Shown here in pieces: positions 59,778 through 62,700 of a DNA stretch of 64,000 nt. Within the stretch, counting starts at the first letter, position 1. Each line of letters begins with the position of its first letter. The notes beneath the pieces are model-generated. The model had not been told where the DNA came from. It worked only from the letters and a program-made list of their open reading frames with translations, and made no database searches. The position numbers were made by a program, and so were the translations under genes. The stretch comes from Orbicella franksi (taxonomy: Eukaryota): the NCBI GenBank assembly GCA_964199315.1, contig OZ116709.1, forward strand, positions 8,680,001 through 8,744,000, in the 5' to 3' direction.

Positions 59778-62700
59778 ATGGAAGGGCTAAAAGAGTTTCT
59801 GACTCCTTCTCGCTTCAGTTTGTTTGGCTACATTGTAGCAGTCCTTTTTCTCTTGACAGGAGCCGTGTTTGTAGGAATCACAAGTAAGGTAAGACTCAAC
59901 GAAAGGAGAACTTTCCTTTGCGATTTCCAAGGTACCCTACCCGACAAGAATTTTCATCAAGCTCAATGCTTTGAGAAGTACGAGGAACAGTACAATTCTC
60001 CACTGCCATTGTATCTGTATGTCCTTTTGAGTTTTGTTGCCGTGGTCGTGGTGTGCCTCGCTTACTCGTGGTGTTGTGTGAAATCTCGGGTTGACCGGCT
60101 ACAAGCCGCGATGGCACCCGATGCGGAAAACCCTCGCCCAAGGCCAAGAATAAGAACTCGTCGAGTTTTCGCGATTTATTTCCTTCATCTAGCGACGCGC
60201 CTAGTCTTAGGAATTGTGTTTACATTGATGCAAAACTTTGTGTTGTATCCAGGTGGCTTTCCGACCGGATATGCTTGCGTTTTGCCAACGGTGAGATCAT
60301 TCAATACCAGCGCTTCTTCAAAAACACTCTCTCACACATCAAACTGCCACAATTCTGTTGCATCTGAAAAGAACAGCTGTATGAGGATGGTTTGGATAGC
60401 TAACATCATTTTCAACTGTCTTGTGTTCGGAGAAATCATTTATCTTCTAGCACGTGCATCACATAGTGGTAAGTTTACGTTCGATTCAGAATTCTCTTCA
60501 AAGTATTTTTTCTACCAAAGGTCAACTGCCGTGACGCCAGCTGGCTTCAGGAAATCCATGAAAAAACTGATCTTACAAGAAACAGAGTTTCTAGAGCCAC
60601 TGATTCACTGTAGCACTGAGGAAGAGGAAGGCAACATCCTCTTAGATGACATCTTTCTGGACGTAATCATTTACACCGGAAGAGCAAAAGAGAAGCTTTT
60701 GAAGGATTGCGAAAGACACCTCATATACGACTCCTATTTAAAACCTGAAAGCCAGCATGGATCAGTTGCGATCAAAACGCGCGGAGAGTTGTTTCTGTCC
60801 AACGAAGACACTCAAAACCCTCGGAAAATTCTCATCGTTGGACGCCCGGGAATCGGAAAGTCTTTGCTCTGTCAGAAACTCCTGCGTGATTGGAGTAAAG
60901 GGCACCTTTTCCACGATAACAGCAAAACGTTCAAGTACGCTTTCTTGTTCCAGTTTCGTTCGTTTTATTCGGAAACATCAGGACAGATCTCCTTTCGGCA
61001 GTTGCTGAACCGCACAGCATATTCAGCCGGTCAAAGAGACGATCAGGTTTTTCAAGAACTGTTGGATAATCCTGAGGAAGTACTTCTTGTATTTGATGGC
61101 TTCGACGAATTTAAGGATCACGATAGCTGCACGACCAACGAGGCGGCACGATTCGGAAATGGCCCAAGCGAGAAAATGCCATTATCAGCACTATACATGA
61201 AACTTCTGCAGGGAAAACTCCTTCCTGGAGCAACAGTGTTGACAAGTTGTAGGCCGACTGTGCTGGGAAGTGTTGAGGTCCCACTGTTTGACAGGACTGT
61301 GGAAATAATGGGCTTTACAGAAGAGAAAGTTCAGAAGTATGTGAACAACTACTGTGAAGGAGACAGCGCGACAGCAACACAAATATGGGAGCACATCTAC
61401 AGCAATTTAAACCTGTTGTCTTTATGCTACATTCCTGTGAATTGTCGCATATTGTGTTTCTTTCTCAAGGCGTTAATCAAGCTCTGTGCCCTGGGATCAG
61501 AAATCGTCACCTTACCGACAAGGCTCACGGAAGTCTACCAAGGAGCTTTGAGATTGTTCATCTTTACGCATCACCCGGAATTTCGCGATAAACCATTTCG
61601 GGGAAATGAACGCTTTTCAGATTCGGTTGAAAAGACCTTGACAGAACTCGGGTCGTTAGCAAGAAAAGGAATAGCCGAAGGGCGACTGATATTCGACTCA
61701 GAAGAAGTGTCAGGAATGATACATTGTGGTTTGCTGAATCAATTGCCTGACAGCAGGTTGTCTCCGGTGGAGTTCAAACAACGTTTTTGCTTCATTCATT
61801 TAACTTTACAGGAGTTTCTGGCCGCTAGAGAGATTGCGAAGATGGAGCCCGATGACCTTAAGGAATTTATTACGTCTAACACGGAAGATCCAAAGTGGCA
61901 TTTGGTCATTCAGTTCGTTGCTGGGTTACTTCATGGCCAGCAGCACAATGACGCGGTCAGCAGCTTTGTAAAGTGCCTTCACGACTCTTCGCTGTCGAAT
62001 CCACCGAATAAAAAGATGGCTTTACTCATGATGAAGTGTTTGTACGAGTACAATGACGATGCTACAGTGAAGAGCGCAGCTTCTCAGCTTCAGCAAAACA
62101 GATGTTTTCGCAATTCGTTTGACATGTGGAATTGCCAAATAACACCTGTTGACTGCACAGCAATTGTGTACTTCTTAAGAAACATTGAGCGGGTGAATTA
62201 CTCACTTTACCTAAGCGCTAATTCTCTAGGAGAAGGGGGATGTAAAGAATTAGCCAAGCTGTTAATGGAAGGAGGCCCAGTTAAATTACTCCTAAAAAAG
62301 AACAACATCACTGACCAGGGTTTGATTTCATTGATAAGAGCTATCAGTGCGGACAAGTGTAAACTCCAGAAGTTGAGCCTTAATTGGAACGACTTAATCA
62401 GTCCAGATGCATTAGTCCTCCTTTGCGAATCACTAAAAACCAAAAGTTGTAAGCTCACTCACTTGCGACTTGGCACATTGCAAATAACTGAACACGTTTT
62501 GTCACACTTGTGTGAATCACTGGAACACGCGAATTGCAAAATCACCAGCTTGAGGTTCAACGATGAGGAACTTTGGACCGACGCGGTTTTGTTGAAGTTC
62601 TGTGAAACACTCAAACACCAAAACTGCCAGGTGAGCTCGTTGAGAATAGAGTGTCAGAAAATTACTAACCAAGGCGTTAAACACTTCTGCGAAACACTAG

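Follow-up and report, generated by a model that had tools for sequence, protein, structure and literature searches.

The gene at positions 59778-62915 of the window (the whole 64,000-nt stretch of Orbicella franksi DNA analysed here) codes for one protein, which combines a four-helix membrane domain, a partly flexible linker, a NACHT domain, helical domains and LRRs of the ribonuclease-inhibitor (RI) type. Residues 1-245 are truly homologous to the chordate connexins, though divergent from them. We consider it very probable that this is an expressed, intronless connexin-like (CxL) NLR of Orbicella; its homology and domains were observed directly, and its channel behaviour is extrapolated from tested relatives. 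The family of connexin-NLR fusions is already known, and the Orbicella gene is an additional member. The features of the gene are as follows (positions of the window; AF2 marks the predicted model).

59280..59777, + strand: 5' untranslated region, unspliced (upstream limit approximate)
59778..62915, + strand: CxL-NLR coding sequence, complete, single exon (intact, intronless ORF of 1045 aa)
59778..60512, + strand: CxL four-helix channel domain, aa 1-245 (Pfam, family profile, Foldseek, VIA-align, AF2), which includes an N-terminal helix at aa 2-7 (AF2) and a conserved helix directly after TM4 (FTFDSEF...FF)
59820..59912, + strand: TM1 helix, aa 15-45, reaching into loop 1, with R39 and E42 (AF2, hydropathy)
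59913..60008, + strand: extracellular loop 1, aa 46-77, with F46-x-C48 and C64-F-x2-Y68 (HMMER alignment)
60009..60113, + strand: TM2 helix, aa 78-112 (AF2, hydropathy)
60114..60158, + strand: short Arg/Pro-rich cytoplasmic loop, aa 113-127 (sequence; pLDDT about 60-70, no secondary structure)
60159..60245, + strand: TM3 helix, aa 128-156, starting R129-V-F-A-I-Y (AF2)
60246..60359, + strand: extracellular loop 2, aa 157-194, with C167, a Ser/Thr-rich insert and C190-x2-S-x3-E-K (AF2, alignment)
60303..60311, + strand: N176-T-S sequon in loop 2, the sole sequon of the membrane domain
60360..60464, + strand: TM4 helix, aa 195-229, with E219-x2-Y222 (AF2)
60465..60797, + strand: cytoplasmic linker, aa 230-340 (full-length AF2 model)
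60798..61367, + strand: NACHT nucleotide-binding domain, aa 341-530 (Pfam NACHT PF05729, E 3e-32)
61368..62114, + strand: HD1/WH/HD2 helical and winged-helix domains, aa 531-779 (weak Pfam NOD2_WH and NLRC4_HD2 matches; AF2)
62115..62900, + strand: RI-type LRRs, about 8 units, aa 780-1041 (matches to ribonuclease inhibitor and the NLRP1 LRR)
63054..63059, + strand: AATAAA polyadenylation signal (sequence)

The 225 residues quoted in the sequence-only reading are the stop-free translation of 59778-60452 and form the start of the 1045-aa ORF. The ATG is preceded by two in-frame stops at a distance of about 20 codons, the MEGLKE start is also present in homologues, and the Orbicella faveolata protein XP_020622150.1 is 99% identical. 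RefSeq labels this orthologue "NLRP12-like", a name that hides the channel domain. Two poly-A RNA contigs, 3305 and 3560 nt long, cover the whole ORF without splice joints. The contigs start at 59280 (run X1) and 59527 (run X12), both colinear with the genome, and terminate at 63086, about 27 nt past the AATAAA signal. In run X2, the depth immediately upstream was zero. A spliced gene was ruled out by the absence of joints in the RNA contigs, and a pseudogene or annotation artefact was ruled out by the intact ORF, RNA support and conservation. The raw reads of run X24 map solely to a repeat at about 63028-63170, leaving the gene uncovered, and are uninformative on transcription. For seven further long ORFs in the window, the Pfam scan came back empty.

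The connexin homology was examined by profile searches. Pfam Connexin was the best match of the Orbicella N-terminal domain itself (E 0.004), with a score of 17.4 bits that falls below the gathering threshold of 31.3 bits. Searched alone against PDB sequences, this domain retrieved no connexin, and the best match was a chance acyltransferase (E 0.83); a family profile was therefore needed. The profile of the close family (A1) matched solved connexins marginally (E 0.05-0.5). With the broader 101-member profile (A2), the first 34 PDB matches were all connexins (E 1.3e-11 to 3e-3), led by Cx31.3/GJC3 (E 1.3e-11), and the connexin matches were colinear over about 200 residues. Pfam Connexin was matched by 30 of the 39 close relatives and by 73 of the 101 distant ones, at best with E 6.4e-10. 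Membership of the connexin family (PF00029/IPR038359) is thus carried by the significant similarity of the family profile. An exhaustive search of representative sequences returned 277 relatives, the best 150 of which all belonged to the coral family (E 1e-18 or better), a ranking that does not extend to chordate connexins.

The sequence-only reading had named innexin, claudin and tetraspanin as competing families, and the profile and structure searches favoured connexin, with LRRC8 close by fold alone. No similarity to Innexin (PF00876) or Pannexin_like (PF12534) was found in the 140 scans of relatives (39 and 101 members), nor in the Orbicella protein itself at E <=10. The A2 profile search of PDB up to E <=10 contained no pannexin, innexin, LRRC8, CALHM, claudin or tetraspanin, and the connexins were followed by rhodopsin noise. 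An innexin, pannexin or LRRC8 identity was rejected by this profile search and by the Pfam scans of relatives.

The AF2 model of the membrane domain (pLDDT 78.9) has helices at residues 2-7, 15-45, 57-72, 78-112, 128-156 and 195-229 and strands at 47-49 and 164-169/186-191. It thus contains the short N-terminal helix, four membrane helices and structured loops of the connexin fold. Four Kyte-Doolittle peaks coincide with the membrane helices, in agreement with the positions of TM1-4 in the sequence-only reading. The best 50 PDB and best 30 Swiss-Prot matches of the model in Foldseek were all connexins. VIA-align gave Z 15.7 with connexin chains (rmsd 3.3, 192 residues) and Z 15.1 with the LRRC8 membrane domain (220 residues aligned). 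Connexin and LRRC8 identities are not separable by fold alone and are separable by sequence. Together, Pfam, the family profile and Foldseek uphold the earlier proposal of a connexin-like domain fused to NACHT-LRR.

The motifs E42-x3-F46-x-C48, C64-F-x2-Y68, Y165-A-C167, C190-x2-S193-x3-E197-K198 and E219-x2-Y222 are present. The HMMER alignment places them in register with Cx26 and Cx31.3, as had been suggested for the motifs shared with connexins, and the E219-x2-Y222 region aligns with 'ELCYL' of Cx26. E42 is retained in 79 of 101 relatives, C48 in 99, C64 in all 101 and E219 in 99. C48 and C64 align with cysteines 1 and 3 of EL1, C167 and C190 with cysteines 1 and 3 of EL2, and the middle cysteines have no counterpart. 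The four loop cysteines are invariant or near-invariant in the 101 relatives, 96-98 of which have two per loop; the absence of the middle cysteines with retention of cysteines 1 and 3, noted in the sequence-only reading, was thus seen both in the alignment and across the family. The canonical connexin pattern of three cysteines per loop (C-x6-C-x3-C and C-x4-C-x5-C) is therefore absent. Connexin membership is still open to a protein with 2+2 cysteines because loops with two cysteines are likewise seen in vertebrates, in Cx23-type and in epsilon-clade connexins (Butler et al., bioRxiv 10.64898/2026.06.13.731801).

Loop 2 is the most variable region of the CxL domain. In the AF2 model it forms a beta-hairpin (164-170 and 185-191) whose tip is of low confidence, and its two cysteines are separated by 22 residues, versus about 10 in Cx26. 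The insert carries the N176-T-S sequon that had been pointed out earlier. In 92 of 101 relatives, the two EL2 cysteines enclose a sequon, versus 52 expected from shuffled loops. The CxL domain as a whole is under purifying conservation, on par with NACHT.

The cytoplasmic linker consists of a conserved membrane-adjacent helix, a helix at 254-268 and, in the AF2 model, low-confidence segments at 279-283 and 304-326. It is predicted to be partly disordered towards NACHT, and its conservation resembles that of NACHT. Walker A (GRPGIGKS at 355) and Walker B (LLVFDGFDE at 436) are both intact. The best solved relatives of the NACHT domain are NLRP5, NLRP1, NOD2 and NLRP3 (E 1e-33 to 1e-29). The LRR region is modelled as regular strand-helix repeats with pLDDT >90. 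The protein therefore has the NLR arrangement, in which LRRs follow a NACHT domain that carries Walker A and B. NACHT and the RI-type LRRs come after TM4, and therefore both are cytoplasmic.

The anthozoan CxL-NLR family was described and functionally tested in a June 2026 preprint that awaits peer review (Butler et al., bioRxiv 10.64898/2026.06.13.731801). The Orbicella gene has the features of this family, namely CxL, NACHT and LRR in one polypeptide from a single exon. According to Butler et al., 92% of anthozoan CxL proteins carry NACHT, and O. faveolata, one of the genomes counted, has 7 CxL proteins. HHpred of the family gave 99.95% to 6L3U, and the similarity network agrees with connexin. 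The anthozoan CxL domains, NACHT-carrying constructs included, formed plasma-membrane hemichannels, and all relatives tested conducted ATP and glutamate. They formed no gap junctions and passed no dye from cell to cell. The channels were opened by depolarisation or CO2 with the NLR ligand absent, and the fused domains 'do not interfere'. AF3 models of the relatives favour hexamers or heptamers. K-h-h-h-x-h is the carbamylation motif, and a K-to-R change abolishes CO2 sensitivity (all Butler et al., bioRxiv 10.64898/2026.06.13.731801). The gene at 59778-62915 is neither mentioned nor tested in the text or supplements of this preprint, which was the only description of connexin-NLR fusions found in a search of the open-access literature.

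By analogy with these relatives, the Orbicella subunits would oligomerise via their membrane domains, giving a hexameric or heptameric large-pore hemichannel in the plasma membrane. For both oligomer state and conductance, the basis of this extrapolation is paralogues of other corals, some of which are about 30-45% identical. The pore would let through molecules of the size of ATP and glutamate, would be opened at least by depolarisation, and would not dock to form gap junctions. Such non-docking fits with the enlarged loop 2, in which N176 is probably N-glycosylated, and with the lost middle disulfide. The non-junctional large-pore channel proposed earlier is borne out for the anthozoan relatives (Butler et al.). 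No K-h-h-h-x-h pattern occurs in aa 1-245. R129 appears to occupy the position of the carbamylation lysine of the preprint, with Arg replacing Lys in a pattern that otherwise fits. The Orbicella member is probably not gated by CO2, because Arg and not Lys starts TM3. We infer that the protein is most likely a membrane-resident immune receptor whose output would include the release of small signalling molecules.

How NACHT-LRR acts on such a pore is a separate question. We tentatively considered, following the sequence-only reading, that LRR sensing and an ATP-driven NACHT ring might shift the TM or N-terminal helices and so open or assemble the pore, leading to ATP/Ca2+ signalling or lytic death; this possibility seems doubtful to us. 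The intact Walker A and B motifs are in its favour, as is a channel domain no better conserved than the linker and NACHT. STAND rings are formed by Apaf-1 and plant NRC resistosomes, and cytoplasmic LRRs are able to modulate the pore of the LRRC8 channel. LRRC8, with its matching fold, is a precedent for such modulation, the hexamer or heptamer stoichiometry is compatible with STAND ring sizes, and fusion to NACHT, seen in 92% of anthozoan CxL proteins (Butler et al.), is obligate and conserved. However, the NACHT-carrying constructs opened on depolarisation or CO2 without an NLR ligand, the fused domains were found not to interfere, and the CxL domain of the relatives oligomerises alone, so that NACHT-driven assembly is unnecessary (Butler et al.). 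The low-confidence linker segments also weaken a rigid coupling of NACHT to the pore. The fuller model, in which a ligand- and ATP-dependent NACHT-LRR ring below the membrane gates the pore and the loop-2 glycan and two-disulfide loops are adaptations against docking, might likewise hold, and we rate it as rather unlikely. If true, an animal NLR would have a large-pore channel as its direct effector, with LRRC8-like mechanics and plant-resistosome-like logic.

It is less likely still that the CxL domain serves mainly as an anchor or scaffold, which tethers and pre-clusters NACHT-LRR at the membrane while partner proteins signal and conductance is incidental or vestigial. The flexible linker and the missing lysine of the CO2 motif would agree with this, and no death-fold effector domain was recognised by Pfam, so the N-terminal domain occupies the usual effector or localisation slot. 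Against it, the N-terminal helix, E42, both cysteine pairs and E219, all pore-related, are conserved family-wide, and four helices with structured extracellular loops are superfluous for a simple anchor. Moreover, conduction of ATP and glutamate was seen in every anthozoan relative tested (Butler et al.). That the domain is no connexin homologue at all, being of the pannexin/innexin/LRRC8 type or a convergent claudin- or tetraspanin-like four-helix domain, is highly improbable: the two cysteines per loop match the innexin/pannexin pattern, the LRRC8 structural match is nearly equal and the domain's own Pfam Connexin score is sub-threshold, but 0 of 140 member scans matched Innexin or Pannexin_like, the profile found 34 connexins and then only rhodopsin noise, the motif register is common to connexins, two-cysteine loops occur in vertebrate Cx23-type connexins, and the similarity network and HHpred of Butler et al. 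point to connexin.

Connexins beyond the chordates upset the textbook view of the origin of gap-junction proteins and link the family to innate immunity. This point has already been made experimentally by the 2026 preprint, and the Orbicella gene adds a member, not a discovery. The sequence-only reading had offered the homology as new, which the preprint had already published, and had suggested that such NLR domains may be related to the origin of connexins. The preprint places this origin as early as the cnidarian-bilaterian ancestor (Butler et al., bioRxiv 10.64898/2026.06.13.731801). As a whole, the interpretation in the sequence-only reading is partly supported: the connexin homology is backed here and the channel function of relatives in the preprint, and neither source lends support to NACHT-driven assembly or opening of the pore or to resistosome-like death. 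The Orbicella gene raises the questions of NLR control of the pore, of the loop-2 sequon and missing middle disulfide in docking failure, and of R129 in CO2 insensitivity.

The closest known systems are the anthozoan CxL-NLRs (e.g., pmCxL62 and edCxL50), which have the same order of N-terminal CxL, NACHT and LRR in a single exon. Their extracellular loops are enlarged and contain two cysteines each, as in the Orbicella protein with its scleractinian host. edCxL50 is CO2-insensitive, and the Orbicella protein, with Arg at the putative carbamylation position, probably behaves likewise. The preprint is silent on which disulfides are retained and on the conserved loop-2 sequon.

The chordate connexins (Cx31.3/GJC3 6L3T/6L3U, Cx26, Cx32, Cx36, Cx43 and Cx46/50) share the homologous four-helix fold and N-terminal helix, and E-x3-F-x-C, C-x2-S-x3-EK and E-x2-Y are in register. 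In contrast, identity is about 15-20%, the connexin loops have 3+3 cysteines instead of 2+2, the Orbicella loop 2 is about twice the connexin length and carries a sequon, and 800 residues of NACHT-LRR stand in place of the short regulatory tail. The Cx31.3 structure is a hemichannel, and Cx31.3 is counted among the connexins without gap junctions (Butler et al.). LRRC8/VRAC also has a large-pore four-helix domain of the same overall fold fused to cytoplasmic LRRs. However, it has no detectable sequence similarity to the Orbicella protein, no NACHT and another LRR type, and belongs to the pannexin/innexin lineage. Vertebrate NLRs of the NLRP/NOD2 type have NACHT, helical domains and RI-like LRRs that are clearly homologous to those of the Orbicella protein. 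They are soluble and carry PYD/CARD effectors, whereas the Orbicella protein has a membrane channel domain in the effector slot. Plant CC-NLR resistosomes (ZAR1, Sr35 and NRC4) are a functional analogy only, as NLRs with a proposed membrane-channel output. In resistosomes, the N-terminal helices of a soluble protein form the pore after activation, whereas the Orbicella protein has a constitutive four-helix connexin fold, and the N-terminal domains of the two are non-homologous.

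The connexin-like (CxL) domain, NACHT and LRR lie in one protein (CxL-NLR), encoded by a single ORF on the plus strand (window 59778-62915, 1045 aa from the first ATG). Two in-frame stops are found about 20 codons upstream of this ATG, and the start MEGLKE is common to the protein and its homologues. Translation of window 59778-60452 gave the 225 stop-free residues quoted in the sequence-only reading. The N-terminal 250 residues were modelled by AlphaFold2 with a 39-sequence alignment (pLDDT 78.9, pTM 0.71); the full-length model had a mean pLDDT of 83.4.

Features of the CxL-NLR (plus strand; positions in the protein)
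aa 1-245, four-helix membrane domain (full-length AlphaFold2 model)
aa 2-7, short N-terminal helix (AlphaFold2, N-terminal model)
aa 15-45, 78-112, 128-156 and 195-229, membrane helices (N-terminal model)
loop 1, strand and helix (N-terminal model)
loop 2, beta-hairpin with a low-confidence tip at about 173-183 (N-terminal model)
linker after the membrane domain, helix 254-268, low confidence at 279-283 and 304-326 (full-length model)
after the linker, NACHT and helical domains (full-length model)
aa 350-527, NACHT, strong Pfam match (E 3e-32)
aa 355, Walker A GRPGIGKS, intact
aa 436, Walker B LLVFDGFDE, intact
C-terminal to NACHT, NOD2_WH, NLRC4_HD2 and LRR_6, weak Pfam matches
to aa 1041, LRR of about 8 regular units (full-length model)

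The region aa 231-1045 resembles solved NLRP5, NLRP1, NOD2 and NLRP3 (E 1e-33 to 1e-29), and its C-terminal tail matches ribonuclease inhibitor. The NACHT-LRR is intact and lies on the cytoplasmic side of TM4. The four TM segments of the sequence-only reading were correct, since the hydropathy peaks coincide with the four AlphaFold2 helices. All of its motifs were found (E42-x3-F46-x-C48, C64-F-x2-Y68, Y165-A-C167, C190-x2-S193-x3-E197-K198, E219-x2-Y222 and N176-T-S), and in HMMER alignments they are in register with Cx26 and Cx31.3. In these alignments, C48 and C64 fall on cysteines 1 and 3 of extracellular loop 1 (EL1), C167 and C190 fall on cysteines 1 and 3 of EL2, and the middle cysteines of connexins have no counterpart, as had been noted. 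In connexins, these middle cysteines are disulfide-bonded to each other (Cx26 C60-C174). Among 101 diverse relatives, C64 and C167 are invariant, C48 is kept in 99 and C190 in 100, and in 96-98 of them each loop holds exactly two cysteines. E219 (99/101), Y134 (100/101) and F46 (89/101) are also conserved. N176-T-S is the only sequon within the membrane domain. A sequon (N-x-S/T) occurs between the EL2 cysteines in 92 of the 101 relatives, against 52 expected if the loops are shuffled with their composition kept; in the close subfamily, 36/39 members keep both N176 and T178 at these positions. The N-terminal helix region carries the charged residues E2, K5, E6 and R12.

The membrane domain is homologous to connexins. 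As a single sequence it gives weak evidence of this: Pfam Connexin was the top match but stayed below threshold (E 0.004, 17.4 bits, cut-off 31.3), and phmmer against PDB sequences returned no relevant match. At the family level, the sequence evidence is strong. There were 80 close homologues, the few with a named source all being from stony corals (Oculina, Desmophyllum, Pocillopora), and an exhaustive profile search gave 277 cluster representatives. Pfam Connexin was matched by 30/39 close and 73/101 diverse members (best E 6.4e-10), and Innexin or Pannexin_like by none of either set. When a profile of 101 members, with the domain of the window as first row, was run against the PDB, the first 34 distinct solved sequences were all connexins, ahead of all other proteins. 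The best match was Cx31.3/GJC3 (6L3T, E 1.3e-11), followed by Cx32, Cx36, Cx40.1, Cx46, Cx26, Cx43 and on to Cx50, in colinear alignments of about 200 residues. After them came rhodopsin noise (E >0.01); pannexin, innexin, LRRC8, CALHM, claudin and tetraspanin were absent from the profile's PDB matches. Foldseek likewise supported the homology, its 50 best PDB chains and its 30 best Swiss-Prot models being connexins only (E ~1e-5, TM 0.5-0.74). However, VIA-align scored LRRC8 membrane domains (Z 15.1, 220 residues, 10% identity) near connexins (Z 15.7, 192 residues, rmsd 3.3), so the fold alone indicates only the large-pore channel superfold. The assignment to connexins comes from the sequence profiles.

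The CxL-NLR is transcribed as an unspliced mRNA. Many poly-A RNA runs from corals contain 75-92% of the sampled words from its stretch.

RNA contigs and poly-A signal (window positions)
59527-63086, RNA contig of 3560 nt, colinear with the genome, no joints
59742-63046, RNA contig of 3305 nt, colinear with the genome, no joints
59280-62402, RNA contig of 3149 nt, colinear with the genome, no joints
63054-63059, AATAAA; two RNA contigs stop at 63086, 27 nt downstream

In one RNA run (X2) the depth was 0 across 59134-59634, immediately 5' of its contig start, which argues against carry-over of genomic DNA. The joint-free contigs and the AATAAA 27 nt before the contig ends therefore indicate an intronless, polyadenylated transcript. 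A short repeated element containing this AATAAA (63028-63170) directly follows the 3' UTR; contig depth there rises from ~25 to 500-900. At 63028/63030, many contigs and 17/17 raw reads of run X24 break to unrelated upstream sequence.

The protein is identical to Orbicella faveolata XP_020622150.1 at 1036/1045 positions. In that species, the orthologue lies on the opposite strand within a gene whose 1444-aa product has DEAD_2 and Helicase_C_2; this helicase gene (BRIP1/FANCJ-like) covers the whole 23-kb locus around it. Here too, the CxL-NLR is antisense within a larger minus-strand gene (53849-55699 and all of 58764-64000). The minus-strand ORF 53849-55681 (611 aa), with internal ~33-aa repeats (...NQT.GVTLEQ) and no Pfam match, may be a large exon of the helicase gene. 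Elsewhere in the window, ORF pairs with near-identical translations lie ~4.7 kb apart on both strands (30721-30993/35397-35669; 32013-32954/36653-37633; also 43918-44484); they had no Pfam match, and suggest a tandem duplicated segment or a repeated element. Conservation of the CxL-NLR is purifying. By domain-wise identity among relatives, the channel domain is as conserved as NACHT; within the membrane domain, variability is highest in loop 2, and the LRR also varies. RefSeq names in the family ('NOD2-like', 'NLRP12-like'; for example P0011 and P0231) omit the connexin-like domain, and only P0011 (Oculina patagonica) has a precomputed PF00029 match.

CxL-NLRs as a class are already known from Butler et al. 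(bioRxiv 10.64898/2026.06.13.731801), so the novelty is low. Their preprint reports CxL domains at the N-terminal end of NLRs in Anthozoa, with each coral genome holding 4-100 copies, NACHT in 92% of CxL proteins, typically single-exon genes, two cysteines per loop, connexins as top Foldseek matches and no similarity link with innexins. It acknowledges earlier annotation of such domains in cnidarian NLRs, suggests an ancestral immune role, and counts 7 CxL proteins for O. faveolata; the individual accession of the orthologue is absent from the preprint and its supplementary table, which do not discuss glycosylation or disulfide pairing. In HeLa cells, anthozoan CxLs reached the plasma membrane, released ATP and glutamate on depolarisation and did not form gap junctions; NACHT-carrying constructs behaved in the same way, and AF3 favoured hexamers or heptamers (bioRxiv 10.64898/2026.06.13.731801). 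By analogy with these relatives, which support the proposed non-junctional hemichannel, CxL-NLR subunits would form a hexameric or heptameric hemichannel in the plasma membrane, without docking, whose pore would open upon depolarisation and pass ATP-sized molecules.

Some CxLs also open on raised CO2 through a lysine carbamate bridge, and K-to-R abolished CO2 gating in pmCxL30 (bioRxiv 10.64898/2026.06.13.731801). TM3 of the present protein starts R129-V-F-A-I-Y, which fits the preprint's K-h-h-h-x-h pattern except for Arg in place of Lys. Judged from sequence, R129 would occupy the carbamylation position, with R226 in TM4 as its would-be partner; because of the pmCxL30 result, the channel is probably CO2-insensitive. 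The central mechanism of the sequence-only reading, that the pore is assembled or opened by oligomerised NACHT, seems rather unlikely to us: the CxL-NACHT fusion is obligate and conserved, but the channels studied in the preprint needed no NLR ligand for opening and the linker is predicted to be partly disordered.

Overall, the original observation was correct and beyond chance, and connexin homology and a non-junctional hemichannel are both supported. Small points added by this study are how the remaining cysteines line up with those of connexins, the excess of the loop-2 sequon across the family, Arg in place of the Lys that would be carbamylated, an mRNA that is unspliced and has a poly-A signal, and the nesting in a DEAD_2 helicase gene. 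The top structure family agrees between the preprint's HHpred match (99.95% to 6L3U; bioRxiv 10.64898/2026.06.13.731801) and our family profile (Cx31.3/GJC3). LRRC8 channels have the same superfold and a cytoplasmic LRR, as the CxL-NLR does, although by sequence they are not relatives; they are the best mechanistic precedent for control of a pore by a cytoplasmic LRR.
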